A stretch of DNA of 64,000 nt, from contig MCFE01000030.1 of the NCBI GenBank assembly GCA_002104905.1, positions 62,001 to 126,000 on the forward strand. The letters are read 5' to 3'. Each line of letters starts with the position of its first letter. The first letter of the stretch is position 1. This DNA is from Basidiobolus meristosporus CBS 931.73. Lineage: Eukaryota; Fungi; Basidiobolomycota. The notes below the pieces were generated by a model that saw only the letters and a program-made list of their open reading frames with translations, ran no database searches and had not been told where the DNA came from. Shown here in pieces: positions 1 to 29,590 of the stretch. Made by a program: the position numbers and the translations under genes.

Positions 1-875
1 TCTTTTCCAAGCAAACTGCCTGCGGGAATATGATTTCAATTCCAACTCGGCGCCATCTATGTTACCATCATAAAATATGGTAGCAAAAGCACGCCCGTCA
101 TAACTTGGCATATGGAGCGAGCTGTGTAGATATAGGCCAAAGAAACTAAAGCGCGTTTTCGCATCTCCGGAATACTGTCTGTTGGGTTGAAAAATACGAT
201 TGACTACTCGAGATACTTTAGCGTTGTCAGGCACACCAAGCTGCTGTATATCGTTGCCAGTAATCTTTTCAAATTCTTCGAGTACCTTATTCATTACGAT
301 GTGGTTTAGAGAAACAAATTTCTCGAGCTCTACGAATTTTGCGTAGCGATCTAGAAGACAAGTACGAATTCTTCGAGCTTTATCAGATGGTAGATCAGAC
401 CAATTATAGCCTTGTCTAGCAACTTCCTTCCCCTTGTTTGAGATTGTTGGCCTCATTCCTGGAATGGAATTCGTTGAAAATATACTCATTGGGCCAAAGA
501 GCGGTATAGCCTCGAATGGACCGATCTCAGACAGTAATTGTATTAGTTTTTCACTCAAAGAGGCTTTTGCTTTTTCATAGTAAATCATTGTTTTGATAAG
601 TTCTGATCCTAATACAGAGGTAAAGATGTTGGTGGCCCTTGTAGTATCACTGATCAGACTTGCGGTTTCCAAGTCTCGAATAGTAGCATCTTGCGAAGCA
701 ACTTCCTGCAACTGATCGAGAAGTGCTGTCAAATCAGAGTATCTAGCATTAGAAGCATAAAGGATAGTGTTAGAATTAGAAGGTGATATATGAATTATTT
801 GGAGCACAAATACGCCAAGTAGTGGTCTTGCCAGTCTGCTATAGAACAGAATTGCAACGAACTAGAAAATTCCAT
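1..875 (-). pseudogene. Decayed Pho87/Pho90/Pho91-type SPX-domain phosphate transporter gene (5' part; runs off the window)
   Basis: Manual minus-strand translation from ATG 875 gives MEFSSSLQFCSIADWQDHYLAYLCSK*FIYHL (in-frame TAA 797-795). Shifted frames then give FTSVLGSELIKTMIYYEK, RYAKFVELEKFVSLNHIVMNKVLEEFEKITG and FATIFYDGNIDGAELELKSYSRRQFAWKR. These match the SPX N-terminus, SPX helices and post-SPX linker of fungal Pho87/91 in order, with at least 3 frameshifts. Confidence 0.7.
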
Positions 876-21864: not shown

Positions 21865-23050
21865 ATGGACCGCTTAGAAACTCGTAGAAGTATGGTTTCT
21901 CTTTGCTGTTCTATTAACCAAACATACGCTTACTGTTTGAGATAGATCTGGACCAAATTTCAGCACCATACCCTGAATACTCCCTGCAACCTGCACCCTT
22001 ACTTGATAGAGAAGATCAAAAAGCCTTTGACGATTTCCTACGGCAGTTCGATCTTGATACTCACGAAACCATCACGCAACCCACTTCTACTCCTTCGAAT
22101 GCCACCAGCTCGACCACACCTATTTTACCCTCCGTAGATGGTAACCCTCTATTTTGTTATGACTCCATCTGCTCCTGCCACAATCTCTAATGCAACGCCT
22201 CTACCTGAAGTTCAAGCAAAAAGCCACACTGAAACCACTGACCCCAAGCAAGCACTCACTTCCACTTGTAGGATATTATTCCTTACGTCTATTGTGATGT
22301 GCCAATAATTCATTGTAACTCAATTCCATGCTAGCTTCCGCTATAACGCCTACTCTTCCCCACACCATGTCACAGCGGGAGCAAAGTGAAGCTGGTGCTT
22401 CCACTTCCACCAATTCCTCCCCCAAGATAACCACAGTAGATGGTCAATCGGAACAACCAACGATACTATCCGATTCGCCCCAAAAATATACTGCAAAACG
22501 TAAGCATTCGGACGCGACCAATCTAGATTCGCCGCAGAAGAGCAATAATACCAGACCTCCTGGAAGAGGGAAAAAGGCACCCCATGAGCTGCTTTCGGAA
22601 AAAGAAAAGAAAGCGAACCATATCGCTTCGGAACAAAAACGGCGACAAAATATTCGGCTGGGTTTTGAGCAGCTGGTGGAGATCGTCCCGACCCTTTCTC
22701 AATGCCATCGTAGTGAATCCGCTATTTTACAAAAATGTTGGTACCTATTGATAGGTCTTTCCATCAACCGGTTTGATAACCGTTTTCATTTGCAGCCGTG
22801 GAGTATATTCACCAGTTAATAGCGCAACGGCAACAATTGAAGCAACGCATTAGAGAGCTGAGAATCTCGGCTGGAGATCCGTATGCACATTCCTCATTTA
22901 TTGTATGGTCTATTTTGGTGTTAACATTTGATTATTCTAGGTCAGATATGATTGACGACTTTTCGGTAAAGCTTTTATTGTATGTTGTTGATAATAGTAG
23001 TAACGCTAATAGCGATTGGAATACAGTCCTCCGACGAAGATATATATTAG
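21865..23050 (+). CDS. INO4: bHLH transcription factor, INO4-like (multi-exon)
   Basis: LLSEKEKKANHIASEQKRRQNIRLGFEQLVEIVPTLSQCHRSESAILQK|SVEYIHQL is the fungal Ino4-type bHLH. N-terminal PLLDREDQKAFDDFL. Modelled stop TAG at 23048-23050. Confidence 0.75.
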
Positions 23051-23779
23051 ACTTTGCAATTGACCATACGACCTTTTCTATTGTGGCTCTATGGCAGCCA
23101 TGGAGCAAATTCTCAAGTGGACCCAATGCACAAGAGAGCAGCGCAAAATCCATCTCTACCTCGGTTGTCATTTCCACTGTCCTACTTTTCAGCAGTCAAT
23201 GATTAGACAGCGTTCCGACTTCCGAGAGTACATGGACCAGTTCAAATAGATTACATTTTTTTCTTTTAATGTAACGCATTTCATTAGTCGCTTATGTAAA
23301 TCCATTTAGATTTCCGTGTTTTCCGAGAACACGACTGGCTTTAGACACCTCGTTTTGTTAATACATATATATTTTCCTGTGGCACCGTATGGTTCGGAAT
23401 TGGAATTATTTTCGAGGTACGAGCGAAGTGCTAGGATGGCTCAAAATTTTTTGGTGGTTGGATGCTTTCGAATGTCTCCTGGAGATCCCCATGCAATCTG
23501 TTTATAGTTCGATCATTGAAACCATGCTGAATCTAAACGGATCTCCCCGCATGATATGACTGAGACAAATTACTAAACAGGAACACAATCCAATTCTTGG
23601 ATCAATAGAAATATTCAATGCAACGTGAAAGGGGTGTTTACATTCTGGGTGAGGGGAGCCGAGTCTAGTCCATGTTGGGATGTGCTTGCCTTGGTATAGG
23701 GATATGATAGGTCATGGTTTGCACTGCACGTGATCTATGATTCAATCGATCCAGTTGTGATCGCCAAGACGAGTGGCGA

Positions 23780-24724
23780 TTAGTCTACTTTACGAGTTGC
23801 CGAGGAGGTAGGGCTTTCCACTGTATGTGGTGTTGCTGGTGGTTCTGGCTGTGGCCGGGTCCAGGTAACTGAGTAGGTCCATATGAACCCAATGGCCGAG
23901 ATGGCCACTAGAAACATGTTCCAAAAGAAACTGATAACATCAGCAGCGCAGCCAATACCCGGAATCCCCGGTTGTGTATTTCTCAGGGCTGGCAAGGAGA
24001 AGAGCATAGAGACACCCAAAGCCATTATGGGAGGCTGAATCTCTCGCTTCAAGAAGACAATTTGAAAGGCCAGGGTGCTGATTCCAAGAGACAGGGCCCA
24101 CATCAGAATTATCACGCAAATACTGAAGCCTTTGGTGTTGGTGGACCTTTTCACCCGGAATGTTATTACGTTTAGTTCGTCTTGAACATGGAACGTGGGC
24201 GCTGTCTCGAAATTTTGTATGTTGGCATCAAAAGCCATTGATACCGGAATGATTTCATCTTCAACTACCCCTGGACTGGTGGCGTACAACAGGAAGCTCG
24301 CCTCATAGACATCAAACGGATAATTGCGACGATTTCCAACCAAGAACGGCACAGTTAGGTCACCGCTTGGCAATAGAGCGGAGCTGTTCTGTGGGAAGGT
24401 GAATACTTTGTATAGAAAGTTGACCGATATGGCTTGGCGAAGCTTCGGCCGTGTGCCCGTTACCAAATTCCCTCTGGGGTCAAAATCAACACTGAGCTGT
24501 GACCTCAGGTTCACGGTGTCGATGGAAACGACAGTTATGGCGATGTCCAGGCGGGTATCATTGTTGGACCCATACTCGGTATTGATATATTTTGGCTCCT
24601 TTTGAATGTAAACGACAAAGATCGGTATGACAAGTGCACAAAGAAGAATGGTCGCAACTCCAGCGTAGACCAAGCGACGCAATAAAAAGCTAGGGAACCT
24701 ATCTCGGAGGCCACGTCCAAGCAT
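23780..24724 (-). CDS. DUF4436-family membrane protein, paralog A (intronless, 314 aa)
   Basis: N-terminal TM, beta-rich ectodomain with NYPFDVYEA, three C-terminal TMs and LFSLPALRNTQPGIPGIG..DVISFFW, typical of DUF4436. Confidence 0.8.
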   Translation of the reverse strand: MLGRGLRDRFPSFLLRRLVYAGVATILLCALVIPIFVVYIQKEPKYINTEYGSNNDTRLDIAITVVSIDTVNLRSQLSVDFDPRGNLVTGTRPKLRQAISVNFLYKVFTFPQNSSALLPSGDLTVPFLVGNRRNYPFDVYEASFLLYATSPGVVEDEIIPVSMAFDANIQNFETAPTFHVQDELNVITFRVKRSTNTKGFSICVIILMWALSLGISTLAFQIVFLKREIQPPIMALGVSMLFSLPALRNTQPGIPGIGCAADVISFFWNMFLVAISAIGFIWTYSVTWTRPQPEPPATPHTVESPTSSATRKVD

Positions 24725-26112
24725 TTTGGCGAAAGATGAGATGCTGTGTGATGAATGATGTGACTGATGCGTGGAGGAGGACGGCCCACTTTTAAAAAGA
24801 AGGCACTTGAGCGGACAATCCGAAAATACCCAATATATTTTTAGTACAATTTCTTGTGCTTGATGATCATTTGCATTGGGATATAATAGTATTCTGACCT
24901 ATCCATCAATGTCTTACAAATAACCGAATAGTGTGCTGAGTTAGATCGACAGATAGCCAATCCGTAGATGCTCTAGATAATAGCTCACCAATCAGCTCTA
25001 TTGTTTGAGGGCTAGGGACTTGAAGCTGAGCCATTGCGAGGGATTAGTTTGGTTACTCAGGAAGCTGATTGGGAGGTAGCCAGCTGCGAAGTGGCTGCAG
25101 CTAGAAGATGGACCAGGAGAAATGGTTGGGGACCATAGTCGTCACTGGGTAGAGGTAAATTATTTGAAGGATAACCAGTCTTAGGTACGATATGGAATGG
25201 TCACTGAGTAGCCTATTGATAATGACCAATCTGGTAGTTCATGCACATTCTGTCATGGGTCCTTCATTGTCATTGCCCCAAGCATGCAAATATGCTTGAG
25301 TATCTCGGCGTTGATAGAGACATGGAGAGCAATGCTTTGGATTTTCTTGTTGTCTACCTCTGCGAAGCCGCTGGGCGTTCCATCTATTGCGGCAAACACT
25401 GCCCACTTCCAATGAATGTACGCTTGGTTGTAGCGTTTAAGACGTCTAGATCGATGCCATACATTTCCAGATAGTACACTTGGACTTTCTTAATGCGAGT
25501 TGGTATGCGATCTAACATCGGACAGTATGATCCATGTTACTATCCGTACTACTCCTATGCCACCAAGACGATGAATCGCTAGCCAGCAGCACTAAAATGG
25601 TGGAAGGGAGGAGGGCGGTGCTAAAGGTACATAGGGATTCCCTGTGTAGAAAATTGTTTGATCTTGCATAGCCTAAGATGGTGGCAAGGATTCTCAGCTG
25701 ATGTTTCAGGTTGTTGTACAGTAGGGGCGGAGATATTGTGTGCGTTTGGTGATTATTCCGGTTTGGCCACTGGTCTACTTGGGCTGATTCGATTGCCTAG
25801 ACACCGTCTTCTGAGATGACCGTCAACAATAAAATAAACCAGTTCTGTCATCAGAGCAGGCTATAATTGGAATCCCGGATCACTGCAGAACTGGTCAGAT
25901 GGACGTATTCTCAATTATACAGTGGATGATCCGCTGCTCAGAGTACTTCATAGTGTACCAGATCTAGCACAGTCACCTAGCGACCACCCTGTAGCATAAT
26001 TAGATAATGGGCCGGCGGTCATGGTAATCATCCATATCGATTGCTTTCGGGTGGCTGAGGATGTAGACAGGCGCTTAAAATAGTTCACCAGGCGTATGGT
26101 ATACATCGTGCT

Positions 26113-26600
26113 TTGACCTCGATTCTTGGAGATGATTTCAATTGCTTCAAGGGGCTGGATGGAAAGGGGATATTGATGATCATTTTTGTGAATGCCTTTT
26201 TTCCAACTCCCAGCTCAAGTGGTTGCTGTAAACAGAGAAAGGGTGACATGGAAATCAAATCGGTTTCCCTTGCATTGCTTGCACCCATAGGCTTTTCTAA
26301 AACAGGTTTTCTTGATCATAACGGACAATGAATGAAGCAGTCATAATGATCCATCTGCAGGCGATGGTATTCAGGTGGTGGGCTTATTCCCGATACATGA
26401 GGTGGTCATGCCTCGAGATTAGCCATTAGAGAGCATGATCGACATCCGATACCCCAACATCAACCTGATATTGGGGACCTCCTGAAAGATTGCTGTTCTT
26501 GTCCCAAACCACCACGAACGCTTCCACACTTGGCAATGGACCTCAGCCCGGTTTTGATTACATGCAACTATTTATAAGTGCTGGCCCATGCCAACTTCTA
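26113..26600 (+). pseudogene. Possible relic of a non-LTR (LINE) apurinic endonuclease domain
   Basis: ILGDDFNC (26122-26145) resembles the GGDFN motif. HTWQWTSARF/DYM (26525-26564, one frameshift) resembles TW....SRIDY. Spacing is plausible; no RT found. Confidence 0.3.
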
Positions 26601-27218
26601 TATTTTCTGGGAAGCATGTGTGGTATGAGATAAGGTTCAAACATGGGCCCTATTCTGTTGCACAGCATCGGCCGAGATGAAAGTGGACTTCAAAAATACC
26701 AGATCAACCAGTTGGATGGGTTGCCAAGCTCTCAGCCGAGATTTGTACGAGTGCGAAGTGGGGACCTGGCTGACCTTCGGGACTGCTCATATTCACCACT
26801 GATGTGATTGGCCAGGGTATTTTATTATTAGTAGCTACGGAAAGCAGGCCCATGGTCTCTACAGGTTATCCCGGGATTTTGTTTCACAGCTTTTTGACTA
26901 TATTTGGCAACGATGTGCCTGATGTTGCTCCGATGATAGTCGTATCCTTGATCGTGTCTTGACCGATCGTACTTGCATTTGGAACCAGATCTACTATGGC
27001 TGGTAGGAGCTTGAAGTAATCAGAGTACGAATGTTCATGGATAGATTGGTGTAGTGCAAGAACCTGTGATAGACAGTATCCTCTATGTCGACTGCTGTCC
27101 TAATGACTGAGAAGCCATGTCTGCGTTGCGTAAGACCCCCAGCTTCGCTCACGGCGCTTTGTACGATCTTGACAGTCACTAGCTTCTAGCAGCGACTTTC
27201 AGTTCCAATCCCCGCAAC

Positions 27219-28148
27219 TTAGTCAAATTTATGAGTGGTGGTCGTTTCCATTGCAAGCGGTGTTGATGGCCGTTGTGGTAGTGGTCTAGTCCAAGTAATG
27301 GAATACGTCCAAATAATGCCGATACTGGAGATGGCCACCAGTAGCATGTTCCAGAAAAACCCGATTATATCGGTGGCGCAACCGATCCCTGGAACTCCGG
27401 GTTGTGTATTTCGTAGAGCTGGCAGGGAGAAGAGCATAGAGACACCAAGAGCTATCACGGGGGGTTGAATCTCTCGCCTTAGGAACACAATCTGAAATGC
27501 CACAGTGCCGAGTCCGAGAGACAGGGCCCACATCAGAATCACCACACAAATGCTAAAGCCTTTGGTAGTGGCGGATCTTGTCATAAGGAAACTTAACTCG
27601 TTCATATCGCTGTCGAAGTTGGAATAGATCTCGAAATTCTGCGCACTGGTATAAACGAAGCATGACACCGGGACAAGGTCATCGTCAAGAGTTCCTGGCG
27701 TTGTGATATACAACAGGATCTTCGCTTCGTAAACATCGAACGGGTAGTTCTGGCGATCACCACTCACAAATGGTATGGATAGTTCACCACTTGGTAGTAG
27801 GAAGGAGCTATTCTGCGGGAAATTAAAGACTTTGTACAGGAAATTAACCGAGATGGATTGATTCAACTTGGATCCACCTTGAGTTATCAGGTTTCCGTAG
27901 GGGAAAAAATCCACGTTGAGCTGTGACTTCAAATTGATCGTGTCCACGGACGTGATGGTGATGGAAAGATCCAGGCGCGTAGCGTTGGTAGACCCATACT
28001 CTGTGGAGTCGTACTTTGGCTCTTTCCGCATGTAAACGACGAAAATCGGTATGACCAGCACGCATAGAAAAAGGGTCGCTATCCCAGCATAGACCAGGCG
28101 GCGGAAGAATAGGTTAGGAATCGTTTCCCGGAGATCACGCCGAAGCAT
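27219..28148 (-). CDS. DUF4436-family membrane protein, paralog B (intronless, 309 aa)
   Basis: Collinear and visibly highly similar to paralog A (RRLVYAGxAT, EYGSxN, NFLYKVF, NYPFDVYEA, TKGFSICV, LPALRNTQPG). Confidence 0.8.
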   Translation of the reverse strand: MLRRDLRETIPNLFFRRLVYAGIATLFLCVLVIPIFVVYMRKEPKYDSTEYGSTNATRLDLSITITSVDTINLKSQLNVDFFPYGNLITQGGSKLNQSISVNFLYKVFNFPQNSSFLLPSGELSIPFVSGDRQNYPFDVYEAKILLYITTPGTLDDDLVPVSCFVYTSAQNFEIYSNFDSDMNELSFLMTRSATTKGFSICVVILMWALSLGLGTVAFQIVFLRREIQPPVIALGVSMLFSLPALRNTQPGVPGIGCATDIIGFFWNMLLVAISSIGIIWTYSITWTRPLPQRPSTPLAMETTTTHKFD

Positions 28149-28750: not shown

Positions 28751-29590
28751 CTATGTAGGCGAGCCTAGCTTAGCTACAAGTTTCTCCACCTCCTGTTTTA
28801 GCCGAATATTTTCGTTTTCGAGCCTTTGAGCTTTGTCCTCAAGCTCGGTGACATACGCCTTTTTCTTTTTCCGACATTCTTTGGCGGCTAGCCGGTTTCG
28901 CATCAGTCGGCGTTGCTTTCGCTCATCGCTTGAAAGGCCTCTCGACGAGCTACCGAGACCTGAGGCCGGGTTTATCTCTTCGGTGGATGATTCAAGTAAG
29001 GTTGAACCGCCTGGCTCACCGTTGGATTCCTGCCCCAGCATAGGTATTGGCCTTGGCAGGGACACAGTGGGGGTGGTGTTTGTAAGCATGGGGTTGGGAA
29101 GAGACACGGTGGTAGAAGCTGCGGAAGGTAGGGAGGAGGTCATGTTAGCCATGCTTGGGAATAGAGAGATTTGAGAGAGAGCTGGAGGTGGGTGAGGCTG
29201 TGTGAGCGTATCTGGGGATGGAAGGTGCCGATATCTAGATTGCCCGTGAAAGGATTGGGAATTGATATCGTAGGAGCGTTGTTCCGATTTAATAGGCGAC
29301 ACGCCAGGGACATTGGCTAAAGGATGCGATGATGGTGTTTGTGCCATTATTGATACTAGGGGAGGGGATGAGTGTAAAGGAGGAGAGTCCTGGAGGGATT
29401 GGGAGTAAATACTGGGGGATGCAGGGTTCCCAATCTTTGAGGCAGGGTGCTTTCTTCTTCGTGAAGCCACCCTGCGGTGATAAGTATCGGTGCTGGATGG
29501 TTGGTTCATGTGCGGCTTGTCCTCTTGAGGGTCGGGAGAAGACTGAGAGGGGGGATACGTAGCTTGAATGGATGGTAGCTGCTCGGTCAT
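28751..29590 (-). CDS. bZIP transcription factor, CREB/ATF1-like
   Basis: C-terminal RKQRRLMRNRLAAKECRKKKKAYVTELEDKAQRLENENIRLKQEVEKL closely follows the CREB basic region and zipper. Ser/Pro-rich N-terminus. Confidence 0.85.
   Translation of the reverse strand: MTEQLPSIQATYPPSQSSPDPQEDKPHMNQPSSTDTYHRRVASRRRKHPASKIGNPASPSIYSQSLQDSPPLHSSPPLVSIMAQTPSSHPLANVPGVSPIKSEQRSYDINSQSFHGQSRYRHLPSPDTLTQPHPPPALSQISLFPSMANMTSSLPSAASTTVSLPNPMLTNTTPTVSLPRPIPMLGQESNGEPGGSTLLESSTEEINPASGLGSSSRGLSSDERKQRRLMRNRLAAKECRKKKKAYVTELEDKAQRLENENIRLKQEVEKLVAKLGSPT

Follow-up and report, generated by a model that had tools for sequence, protein, structure and literature searches.

Results

Two intact DUF4436 genes lie in tandem in Basidiobolus meristosporus

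Two single-exon open reading frames (ORFs) on the reverse strand of the window, by which we mean the whole 64,000-nucleotide stretch of Basidiobolus meristosporus DNA that was analysed, encode members of the Pfam family DUF4436 (PF14494); their features, including those that resemble features of pLGICs (pentameric ligand-gated ion channels), are collected in Table 1. Paralog A matched the family profile with an E value of 4.1e-30 (105.4 bits) and paralog B with an E value of 1.1e-28 (100.7 bits), against a gathering score of 23.2 bits, and the matches spanned profile positions 16 to 249 of 255. No match to either protein was found in NCBIfam. Since both are collinear with full-length homologues of 314 to 319 amino acids, A and B are single-exon genes, and intact ORFs stand exactly where the initial annotation had placed two intronless paralogs. 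The two proteins share 65% identity from end to end, with a dN/dS of about 0.17, and the similarity is limited to the coding sequences. Both copies are under purifying selection, and the pair is a genus-level tandem duplication.

Table 1. Positions of the two genes and of their landmarks in the window
Feature	Residues	Positions	Strand	Basis or remark
Paralog A, DUF4436 gene	314 aa	23780..24724 (incl. stop codon)	-	single-exon ORF
A TM0, N-terminal transmembrane (TM) helix	13-41	24602..24688	-	AF2 helix, hydropathy peak
A ectodomain, predicted pLGIC-type beta-sandwich	56-193	24146..24559	-	
A D69, end of beta1 / beta1-beta2 turn	69	24518..24520	-	candidate pLGIC interface acidic residue
A Pro-loop motif Y135-P136-F137-D138	135-138	24311..24322	-	between strands 121-126 and 139-150
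A R193, pre-M1 arginine, end of last strand	193	24146..24148	-	conservation and CRT1/CRB1 alignment
A M1-equivalent helix	195-224	24053..24142	-	AF2 model; aligns with pLGIC M1
A M2-equivalent helix, short	232-248	23981..24031	-	AF2 model (helix 231-248)
A M2-M3 loop, Pro/Gly-rich	249-259	23948..23980	-	conservation
A M3-equivalent helix	260-287	23864..23947	-	AF2 model; followed by basic cytoplasmic tail
Paralog B, DUF4436 gene	309 aa	27219..28148 (incl. stop codon)	-	single-exon ORF
B Pro-loop motif YPFD	135-138	27735..27746	-	
B end of M2 with M2-M3 loop, LRNTQPGVPGIG	245-256	27381..27416	-	

The order of motifs described in the annotation was recovered as well, each motif being found again in the two ORFs: an N-terminal TM helix (residues 13 to 41), DIAITVVSIDTVNL (60 to 73), NYPFDVYEA (134 to 142), ITFRVKRS or LSFLMTRS immediately ahead of a TM helix, LRNTQPGIPGIG, and xDVIxFF. 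In the predicted layout, an Arg-rich cytoplasmic N terminus is followed by a TM helix (TM0), a ten-strand beta-sandwich, equivalents of M1, M2, and M3, and a short cytoplasmic tail. The four-helix M1-M4 arrangement with both termini outside was not seen; one helix precedes the ectodomain, three follow it, and both termini are predicted to be cytoplasmic. In paralog A, an Arg-rich cytoplasmic tail lies ahead of TM0, N-glycosylation sequons occur at N55 and N113, and R227 and a Pro-Pro cap precede the M2 helix. TM0 was the least conserved TM segment of the family (mean entropy, 2.89 bits).

Conserved residues recall the pLGIC signature

Residue frequencies were determined over 107 DUF4436 members and, for D69, over 85 sequences including bacteria; because the motifs are conserved across the 107 members, they are not due to chance. 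In pLGICs, the tip of the beta6-beta7 loop carries [F/Y]-P-x-D, in which the Pro is invariant (PMC4795631, Table 1). This superfamily signature is present in DUF4436, with P136 in 100% of the members, Y135 in 93% (F in 7%), and D138 in 92% (E in 7%). The conserved arginine ahead of M1, which in pLGICs pairs with the Pro-loop Asp, is likewise found (R193, 99%). Position 69 was D in 85%, N in 8%, and E in 4% of the sequences and is a candidate equivalent of GLIC D32 in a comparison of aligned ranges rather than of superposed residues. F172, with which the strand in the beta9 position begins, was F, W, or Y in 86% of the members, including all bacterial members, and may, judging by strand order, correspond to the buried beta9 aromatic of GLIC, W160.

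Conservation across the family peaked in the M2-M3 loop (mean entropy, 1.34 bits), and the M2 equivalent came second (1.65 bits). R248, G258, and D262, the last near the start of M3, were found in 100% of the members, F242 in 99%, and Q251 in 93%. A proline in the M2-M3 loop, a feature of 88% of pLGICs, was present; P252 (99%), P255 (98%), and P245 at the end of M2 (96%) were all kept in bacteria. Ahead of M2 stand R227 (80%), which is basic, and E230 (62%), which is acidic. W209 was invariant in the M1 equivalent; the proline kink of M1 (M1 14', 77% of pLGICs) was absent, residues 195 to 224 holding no conserved proline.

The predicted fold resembles that of pLGICs, and sequence similarity is marginal

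The two AlphaFold2 (AF2) models had pLDDT values of 91.9 (paralog A) and 93.2 and were built from deep, diverse alignments with no templates. Fold searches with the model of paralog A returned matches to pLGICs only, at whole-chain TM-scores of <0.5 (about 0.4) and with high rmsd. When the ectodomain was modelled alone and searched against 48,161 representative chains, the best 29 chains were all pLGIC ectodomains or AChBPs, which ranked above all other beta-sandwiches. The ectodomain is thus predicted to be a beta-sandwich of the pLGIC/AChBP type, a fold that the initial annotation had anticipated and that was recovered with the whole chain and with the ectodomain alone. The order of strands from the Pro-loop to M1 was the same in the DUF4436 model and in pLGICs, and YPFD, assigned in the annotation to the beta6-beta7 loop, was placed in the AF2 model between the strands that take the beta6 and beta7 positions, M1 being four strands further on. 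The range of the full-chain model stopped opposite GLIC residue 284, the end of M3, and that of the ectodomain model opposite GLIC residue 196. An ESMFold model of a bacterial member (ESM Atlas) agreed with the AF2 model at a TM-score of 0.80 to 0.85. Oligomer prediction with three copies of residues 10 to 292 and without the family alignment gave values of 0.20 and 0.05, the mark being 0.32, and speaks neither for nor against assembly.

Single-sequence and shallow-profile searches of the PDB yielded no experimentally determined DUF4436 structure; the matches that they returned to XTRP3, CfaE, and clumping factor were noise. A feature search of the ESM Atlas without PF14494 gave no usable match.

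At the sequence level, hmmsearch placed YPFD on the Pro-loop (YPFD or FPFD) of CRT1 from octopus and CRB1 from squid and R193 on their pre-M1 Arg, both in register and about 55 residues apart, at marginal E values, 0.035 to 0.13 for the in-register alignments and 0.035 to 0.22 for the cephalopod receptors. Neither A nor B matched Pfam Neur_chan_LBD or Neur_chan_memb at an E value of ≤1, and over the 107 members no Neur_chan family was among those listed at an E value of ≤10.

DUF4436 is widespread and differs from known pLGICs in architecture

The family comprises 2,133 clusters at 50% identity; the named representatives within the closest 150 of these were all fungal, and further members occur in green algae and in diverse bacteria. 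A word-based search with a 107-sequence profile gave at least 9 matches, including a member from Gonium pectorale. Although DUF4436 had been annotated as a family of mycobacteria and their relatives, it is, with its fungal, green-algal, and diverse bacterial members, not mainly mycobacterial. Genomes with several paralogs are common in the family, and the same holds for pLGIC subunits. Long members were mostly double DUF4436 chains, which are possibly merged tandem genes; isolated long members carried F-box/FBO_C or p25-alpha, from which no clue to function was gained. DUF4436 is named in a single paper, in which an Aspergillus flavus member appears in a list of genes with differential expression, and no paper linking the family to pLGICs was found.

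The bacterial proteins (Actinomycetota, Ignavibacteria, and Acetobacterales) belong to the same family as the Basidiobolus pair and have the same predicted fold and landmark residues, but they are 20 to 30% identical to the fungal proteins and form a separate clade. In the gene neighbourhoods of bacterial loci, located with a 10-sequence family alignment, no conserved partner gene was found. An alpha/beta hydrolase gene adjoins the DUF4436 gene in Tsukamurella and is merely nearby, on the other strand, in Streptomyces.

Compared with the prokaryotic channels GLIC, ELIC, sTeLIC, and DeCLIC (PF02931 and PF02932), DUF4436 proteins lack M4 and have an N-terminal TM helix instead; their ectodomain is shorter by about 40 residues, little of loop C is left beyond a tight turn, the M1 proline is missing, M2 is shorter, and the M2-M3 region is far more conserved. 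Unlike ZAC and the eukaryotic Cys-loop receptors (GABA-A, GlyR, GluCl, nAChR, and 5-HT3), which occur in animals, DUF4436 proteins, which occur in fungi, bacteria, and a green alga, have neither the Cys-loop disulfide nor the N-terminal helix of those receptors, nor the M3-M4 cytoplasmic domain and M4. They also differ from cephalopod CRT1 and CRB1, which are canonical four-helix pLGIC subunits serving as sensory receptors.

Discussion

Taken as a whole, the data are likely best explained if A and B, which are DUF4436 proteins, represent pLGIC-like subunits. That the family and pLGICs share a fold and a common ancestor is, in our judgment, quite probable. Of the proposal in the initial annotation that the genes are cryptic pLGIC relatives, this part is supported by the fold searches and by residue conservation, whereas the bacterial acquisition that it added is not. 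More tentatively, DUF4436 proteins may be ring-forming gated channels, and it is conceivable, at somewhat less than even odds, that they constitute an ancient branch of Pro-loop receptors whose pentameric gated channels are laid out as TM0-ectodomain-M1-M2-M3. In such a channel, the subunits would assemble into a ring, and a change in the ectodomain would pass via the Pro-loop, the pre-M1 segment, and the M2-M3 junction to M2, which would then open an ion path, or the signal might cross the membrane otherwise. TM0 would occupy the peripheral, lipid-facing place of M4; such a substitution fits its topology, which runs from in to out like that of M4, and its low conservation. TM0 might have originated by circular permutation or, at least as simply, as an uncleaved signal peptide that was retained after loss of M4.

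We think it unlikely, though worth serious weight, that the proteins are related to pLGICs by descent and fold and yet are not ion channels, being instead a re-used sensor, a scaffold, or a binding or catalytic module at the membrane interface, centred on the invariant polar cluster R248, N249, Q251, D262, and W268, located where M2 and M3 reach the outer leaflet. Conservation is highest at the top of M2, in the M2-M3 loop, and at the start of M3, beyond that of any part of a canonical pLGIC, which would suit such a module, as would the short, mostly hydrophobic M2, the nearly absent loop C, and a literature that amounts to one differential-expression listing. However, because the M2-M3 junction is the gating interface in pLGICs, a gated channel would be expected to conserve it just as well, and R227 and E230 stand just ahead of M2, where pLGICs have their charge-selectivity residues.

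Common ancestry itself would be lost if the resemblance were convergent, that is, if an unrelated membrane protein had brought a beta-sandwich ectodomain together with a helical bundle, the presence of YPFD and the Arg being a coincidence. The low TM-scores and high rmsd, sequence E values at noise level, the missing Pfam cross-match, and a number and order of helices unlike those of pLGICs speak for convergence. We nevertheless consider it improbable, since the ectodomain alone picks pLGIC ectodomains and AChBPs before other beta-sandwiches, the strands between the Pro-loop and M1 follow one another in the same order, five separate interface markers occur at matching positions and frequencies, and the marginal alignments are in register at both landmarks. 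It is more improbable still that the fold is an AF2 artefact, the sequence having been drawn to a well-learned pLGIC template. Both models are predictions for a family in which we found no experimental structure, but their pLDDT values and template-free, deep alignments argue against this, as do a model far from copying any pLGIC, the agreement with the independent ESMFold model, and a conserved-residue argument that does not depend on the model.

A recent acquisition of both genes by Basidiobolus from bacteria, which the annotation had suggested and for which the existence of bacterial members, some on actinobacterial plasmids, and the lack of introns in A and B might speak, is hardly credible, since the closest relatives are from chytrids, Kickxellomycotina, and Rhizopus, the tree splits bacteria from eukaryotes at 97/97, unites the chytrids (96/88), and groups Basidiobolus with Kickxellomycotina and Rhizopus (94/97), and the GC content near A and B does not stand out in the window. 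In its fungal portion, the tree tracks fungal phylogeny, and descent within fungi is vertical; DUF4436 may have undergone an ancient inter-domain transfer.

Channels of the pLGIC type have generally been considered absent from fungi, and a predicted pLGIC-like fold in Basidiobolus matters for that reason. DUF4436 appears to be an overlooked pLGIC branch in which the order of helices is rearranged, of the kind foreseen by the authors of the cited pLGIC work, who cautioned that highly divergent members could evade sequence searches. If this branch does form pentameric gated channels, a receptor of the pLGIC type would have gone unnoticed through two decades of sequence searches in fungi ranging from chytrids to Aspergillus, as well as in some green algae and many bacteria. 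Confirmation would alter what is known of where pLGIC receptors occur and of how they began, would mean that M4 is dispensable or replaceable, and would make of DUF4436, which occurs in pathogens (Batrachochytrium, Rhizopus, Aspergillus, and mycobacteria and their relatives) and in model fungi, a channel or receptor open to testing. The extreme conservation of the junction between ectodomain and membrane would offer a minimal natural system for studies of pLGIC gating.

Tandem DUF4436 genes

The two DUF4436 (Pfam PF14494) paralogs, A and B, are single-exon genes of the Basidiobolus genome, with intact ORFs that lie exactly where the initial annotation had placed them and that contain every motif it quoted. 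They were 65% identical across their full length, with nucleotide similarity (~71%) limited to the coding sequences, and were colinear with homologues of 314 to 319 amino acids of Basidiobolus ranarum and B. meristosporus (66 to 70% identity). No third DUF4436 copy was found within the window. The dN/dS ratio between A and B was ~0.17, at a dS close to saturation, and both paralogs have therefore been kept by selection. The 2.5-kb spacer between them contains no ORF of ≥80 amino acids in either orientation, nor any sequence resembling the paralogs, and may consist of regulatory DNA or harbor a spliced or noncoding gene. Directly downstream of paralog A, an ORF and the one after it appear to be continuous across a brief gap or change of frame; this arrangement suggests a spliced basic helix-loop-helix transcription factor gene. 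A bZIP gene with the same orientation as paralog B is located 600 bp upstream of it.

Features of the window and predicted elements of the DUF4436 chain (residues numbered as in paralog A)
Feature	Position	Strand	Remark
ORF with basic helix-loop-helix domain	22328-23202	+	Pfam HLH, E 2.5e-07; INO4-like
Continuation ORF	22798-23202	+	
Paralog A	23780-24724	-	314 aa; DUF4436, E 4e-30
Spacer	24725-27218		
Paralog B	27219-28148	-	309 aa; DUF4436, E 1e-28
bZIP gene	28751-29590	-	279-aa Ser/Pro-rich protein; C-terminal bZIP_1, E 1.3e-13
N-terminal helix (TM0)	residues 13-41		AlphaFold2
Beta-sandwich	residues ~49-193		AlphaFold2
Helix M1	residues 195-224		AlphaFold2
Helix M2	residues 231-248		AlphaFold2
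Helix M3	residues 260-287		AlphaFold2

Predicted fold

The whole-chain AlphaFold2 model (107-sequence alignment) had a pLDDT of 91.9 and a pTM of 0.81. Hydropathy, an Arg-rich N terminus, two N-glycosylation sequons in the ectodomain, and basic residues past the last helix together give a consistent topology of N-in, TM0, ectodomain, three membrane helices, and C-in. When the model was compared with the PDB by Foldseek, at least 500 matches were obtained at an E value of ≤0.001, of which the best 50 were all ligand-gated ion channels of the pentameric type (pLGICs) (best E value, 1.6e-9; ~290 columns; 12 to 17% identity). The ectodomain, folded alone (pLDDT 93.2) to guard against a trivial likeness of the kind "sandwich plus helices," also had only pLGICs among its best 50 matches, ectodomain-only entries included. 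In the ESM Atlas, the top match of the whole chain was a bacterial DUF4436 cluster (TM 0.80/0.85), which means that a second, independent predictor arrived at this fold as well; clusters of Neur_chan_LBD/memb came next (TM 0.47 to 0.52). The superpositions on pLGICs were loose (TM-scores of 0.33 to 0.47), and the case for the predicted fold rests on the specificity of the ranking, the coverage of both domains, and the signature residues.

Signature residues and conservation

Jaiteh et al. (PMC4795631, Table 1) define the pLGIC superfamily by a small set of residues located where the ectodomain meets the membrane. In the DUF4436 alignment, the Pro-loop aromatic was Tyr (Y135) in 93% and Phe in 7% of sequences (F 71% and Y 25% in pLGICs), its Pro (P136) was present in 100% (100%), and its acidic residue was Asp (D138) in 92% and Glu in 7% (93% and 3%). 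The pre-M1 Arg (R193) was found in 99% (94%), the candidate beta9 aromatic (position of F172) was F/W/Y in 86% (W 71%, F 16%, and Y 11%), and the M2-M3 prolines P252 and P255 were found in 99% and 98% (88%). The conserved M1 Pro (77% of pLGICs) was absent across the DUF4436 alignment, in which W209 is invariant (pLGIC frequencies from PMC4795631). In the AlphaFold2 model, strand 121-126 precedes YPFD and strand 139-150 comes after it, and exactly four strands separate the motif from M1; this order (Pro-loop, beta7, beta8, beta9, beta10, M1) is that of pLGICs and places YPFD in the beta6-beta7 position. The GLIC triad D32-D122-R192 includes an acidic residue of the beta1-beta2 loop, of which D69, in the beta1-beta2 turn (Asp in 85% of sequences), is the inferred counterpart. 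The signature residues were all retained in bacterial and algal members. Mean column entropy was lowest in the M2-M3 loop (1.34 bits), followed by M2 (1.65 bits), and peaked in TM0 (2.89 bits); in pLGICs, conserved residues likewise cluster at the ectodomain-membrane junction, and M4 is poorly conserved, as TM0 is here.

When profiles built from 107 or 85 sequences were used, two entries of octopus CRT1 and one protein of squid, CRB1, ranked within the top four PDB matches (E values of 0.035 to 0.22), YPFD aligning with their YPFD/FPFD and the Arg with their pre-M1 Arg, running into M1. An antibody CDR3, a chance match, scored level with these, and no match to the Pfam Neur_chan models was obtained from DUF4436 sequences; sequence comparison by itself supports kinship with pLGICs only marginally.

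Differences from canonical pLGICs

Unlike canonical pLGICs, DUF4436 proteins lack M4 and the M3-M4 loop, are predicted to have a TM helix ahead of the ectodomain and both termini in the cytoplasm, and have no N-terminal ectodomain helix; the ectodomain of GLIC is ~40 residues longer. At the position of loop C there is a two-residue turn in these proteins and insertions in other members. M2 has only 17 to 18 residues, is mainly hydrophobic, and is preceded by a Pro-Pro cap. R227 (80%) and E230 (62% family-wide; Gln in A and B) stand just before M2, where the charge-selectivity residues of pLGICs are located.

TM0 runs from in to out, as does M4 of pLGICs. A circular permutation, in which the extracellular end of M4 was joined to the start of beta1 and the chain was cut in the M3-M4 loop, would yield exactly the DUF4436 helix order, and the 16-residue linker (42-57) has the length needed to span to the top of beta1. 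Alternatively, and more simply, M4 may have been lost and a signal peptide kept uncleaved; such a peptide would have the N-in/C-out orientation of TM0. Judged by the features that define pLGICs, DUF4436 is not a canonical member, and the most fitting description is that of a sister family sharing their core.

Family membership and descent

When 1.84 billion cluster representatives were searched with a profile, 2,133 members were identified at an E value of ≤0.001 (437 at ≤1e-30); the named proteins looked up among the best 150 were all fungal. Fungal members were found in chytrids (Batrachochytrium, Polyrhizophydium, Gorgonomyces, Globomyces, Boothiomyces, Kappamyces, and Lobulomycetales), Kickxellomycotina (Dimargaris and Dispira), and Rhizopus, and one from Aspergillus flavus has been mentioned (PMC6616650). 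The family also reaches beyond fungi and bacteria, since a member of the green alga Gonium pectorale (P0175) kept all landmark residues, on a very long tree branch. Bacterial members were present in genomes of Ignavibacteria, Acetobacterales, and Actinomycetes and on plasmids of Tsukamurella, Mycobacterium riyadhense, Kitasatospora, and Streptomyces, and no conserved gene neighborhood was found around the bacterial copies. On the Tsukamurella plasmid (L006, 5866-6732 and neighbors), the DUF4436 gene starts 4 bp past the end of an alpha/beta hydrolase gene that is read in the same direction; the vicinity of the Streptomyces copy (L008) likewise contains alpha/beta hydrolases, together with a TetR regulator, and the A. 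flavus annotation couples DUF4436 with "metal-dependent hydrolase" (PMC6616650). These data are too thin for a call on a hydrolase association. Some of the long members (P0013, P0016, P0034, P0095, and P0103) have two DUF4436 stretches per chain and may be merged models of tandem genes such as A and B or real tandem-subunit proteins; other fusions, with F-box and FBO_C or with p25-alpha, occurred in single members.

In an unrooted maximum-likelihood tree of 27 named or locus-derived members (unnamed metagenomic rows excluded), bacteria and eukaryotes were split (support 97/97), chytrids formed one group (96/88), and Basidiobolus grouped with Kickxellomycotina and Rhizopus (94/97). All five sequences from Basidiobolus clustered together (100/100), and the two window copies branched at the unresolved base of this cluster. 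This species-tree pattern indicates old fungal genes and a genus-level duplication for the tandem pair. The initial annotation of cryptic pLGIC relatives is supported by fold and signature residues, and its suggestion of bacterial acquisition is unsupported as far as recent transfer is concerned.

Possible function

Fungi are without pLGICs in the pLGIC reference inventory. No paper linking DUF4436 to pLGICs was found in a full-text literature search with most subscription journals outside it; earlier notice elsewhere or in structure-classification databases is possible. We regard common ancestry and a shared fold with pLGICs as probable. A ring-forming gated channel is proposed tentatively, by analogy: subunits would assemble as a ring, a change in the ectodomain would be passed through the junction of D69, YPFD, R193, and the M2-M3 loop to M2, and ions might pass along M2. 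A nonconducting sensor or some other role, with the invariant R248/Q251/D262 cluster as its basis, seems somewhat less likely than a channel. Given the vestigial loop C, a ligand, if any, would probably not bind in the manner of classical agonists; speculatively, protons, ions, or intersubunit sites lower in the ectodomain (compare GLIC, sTeLIC, and ZAC) would be more plausible.
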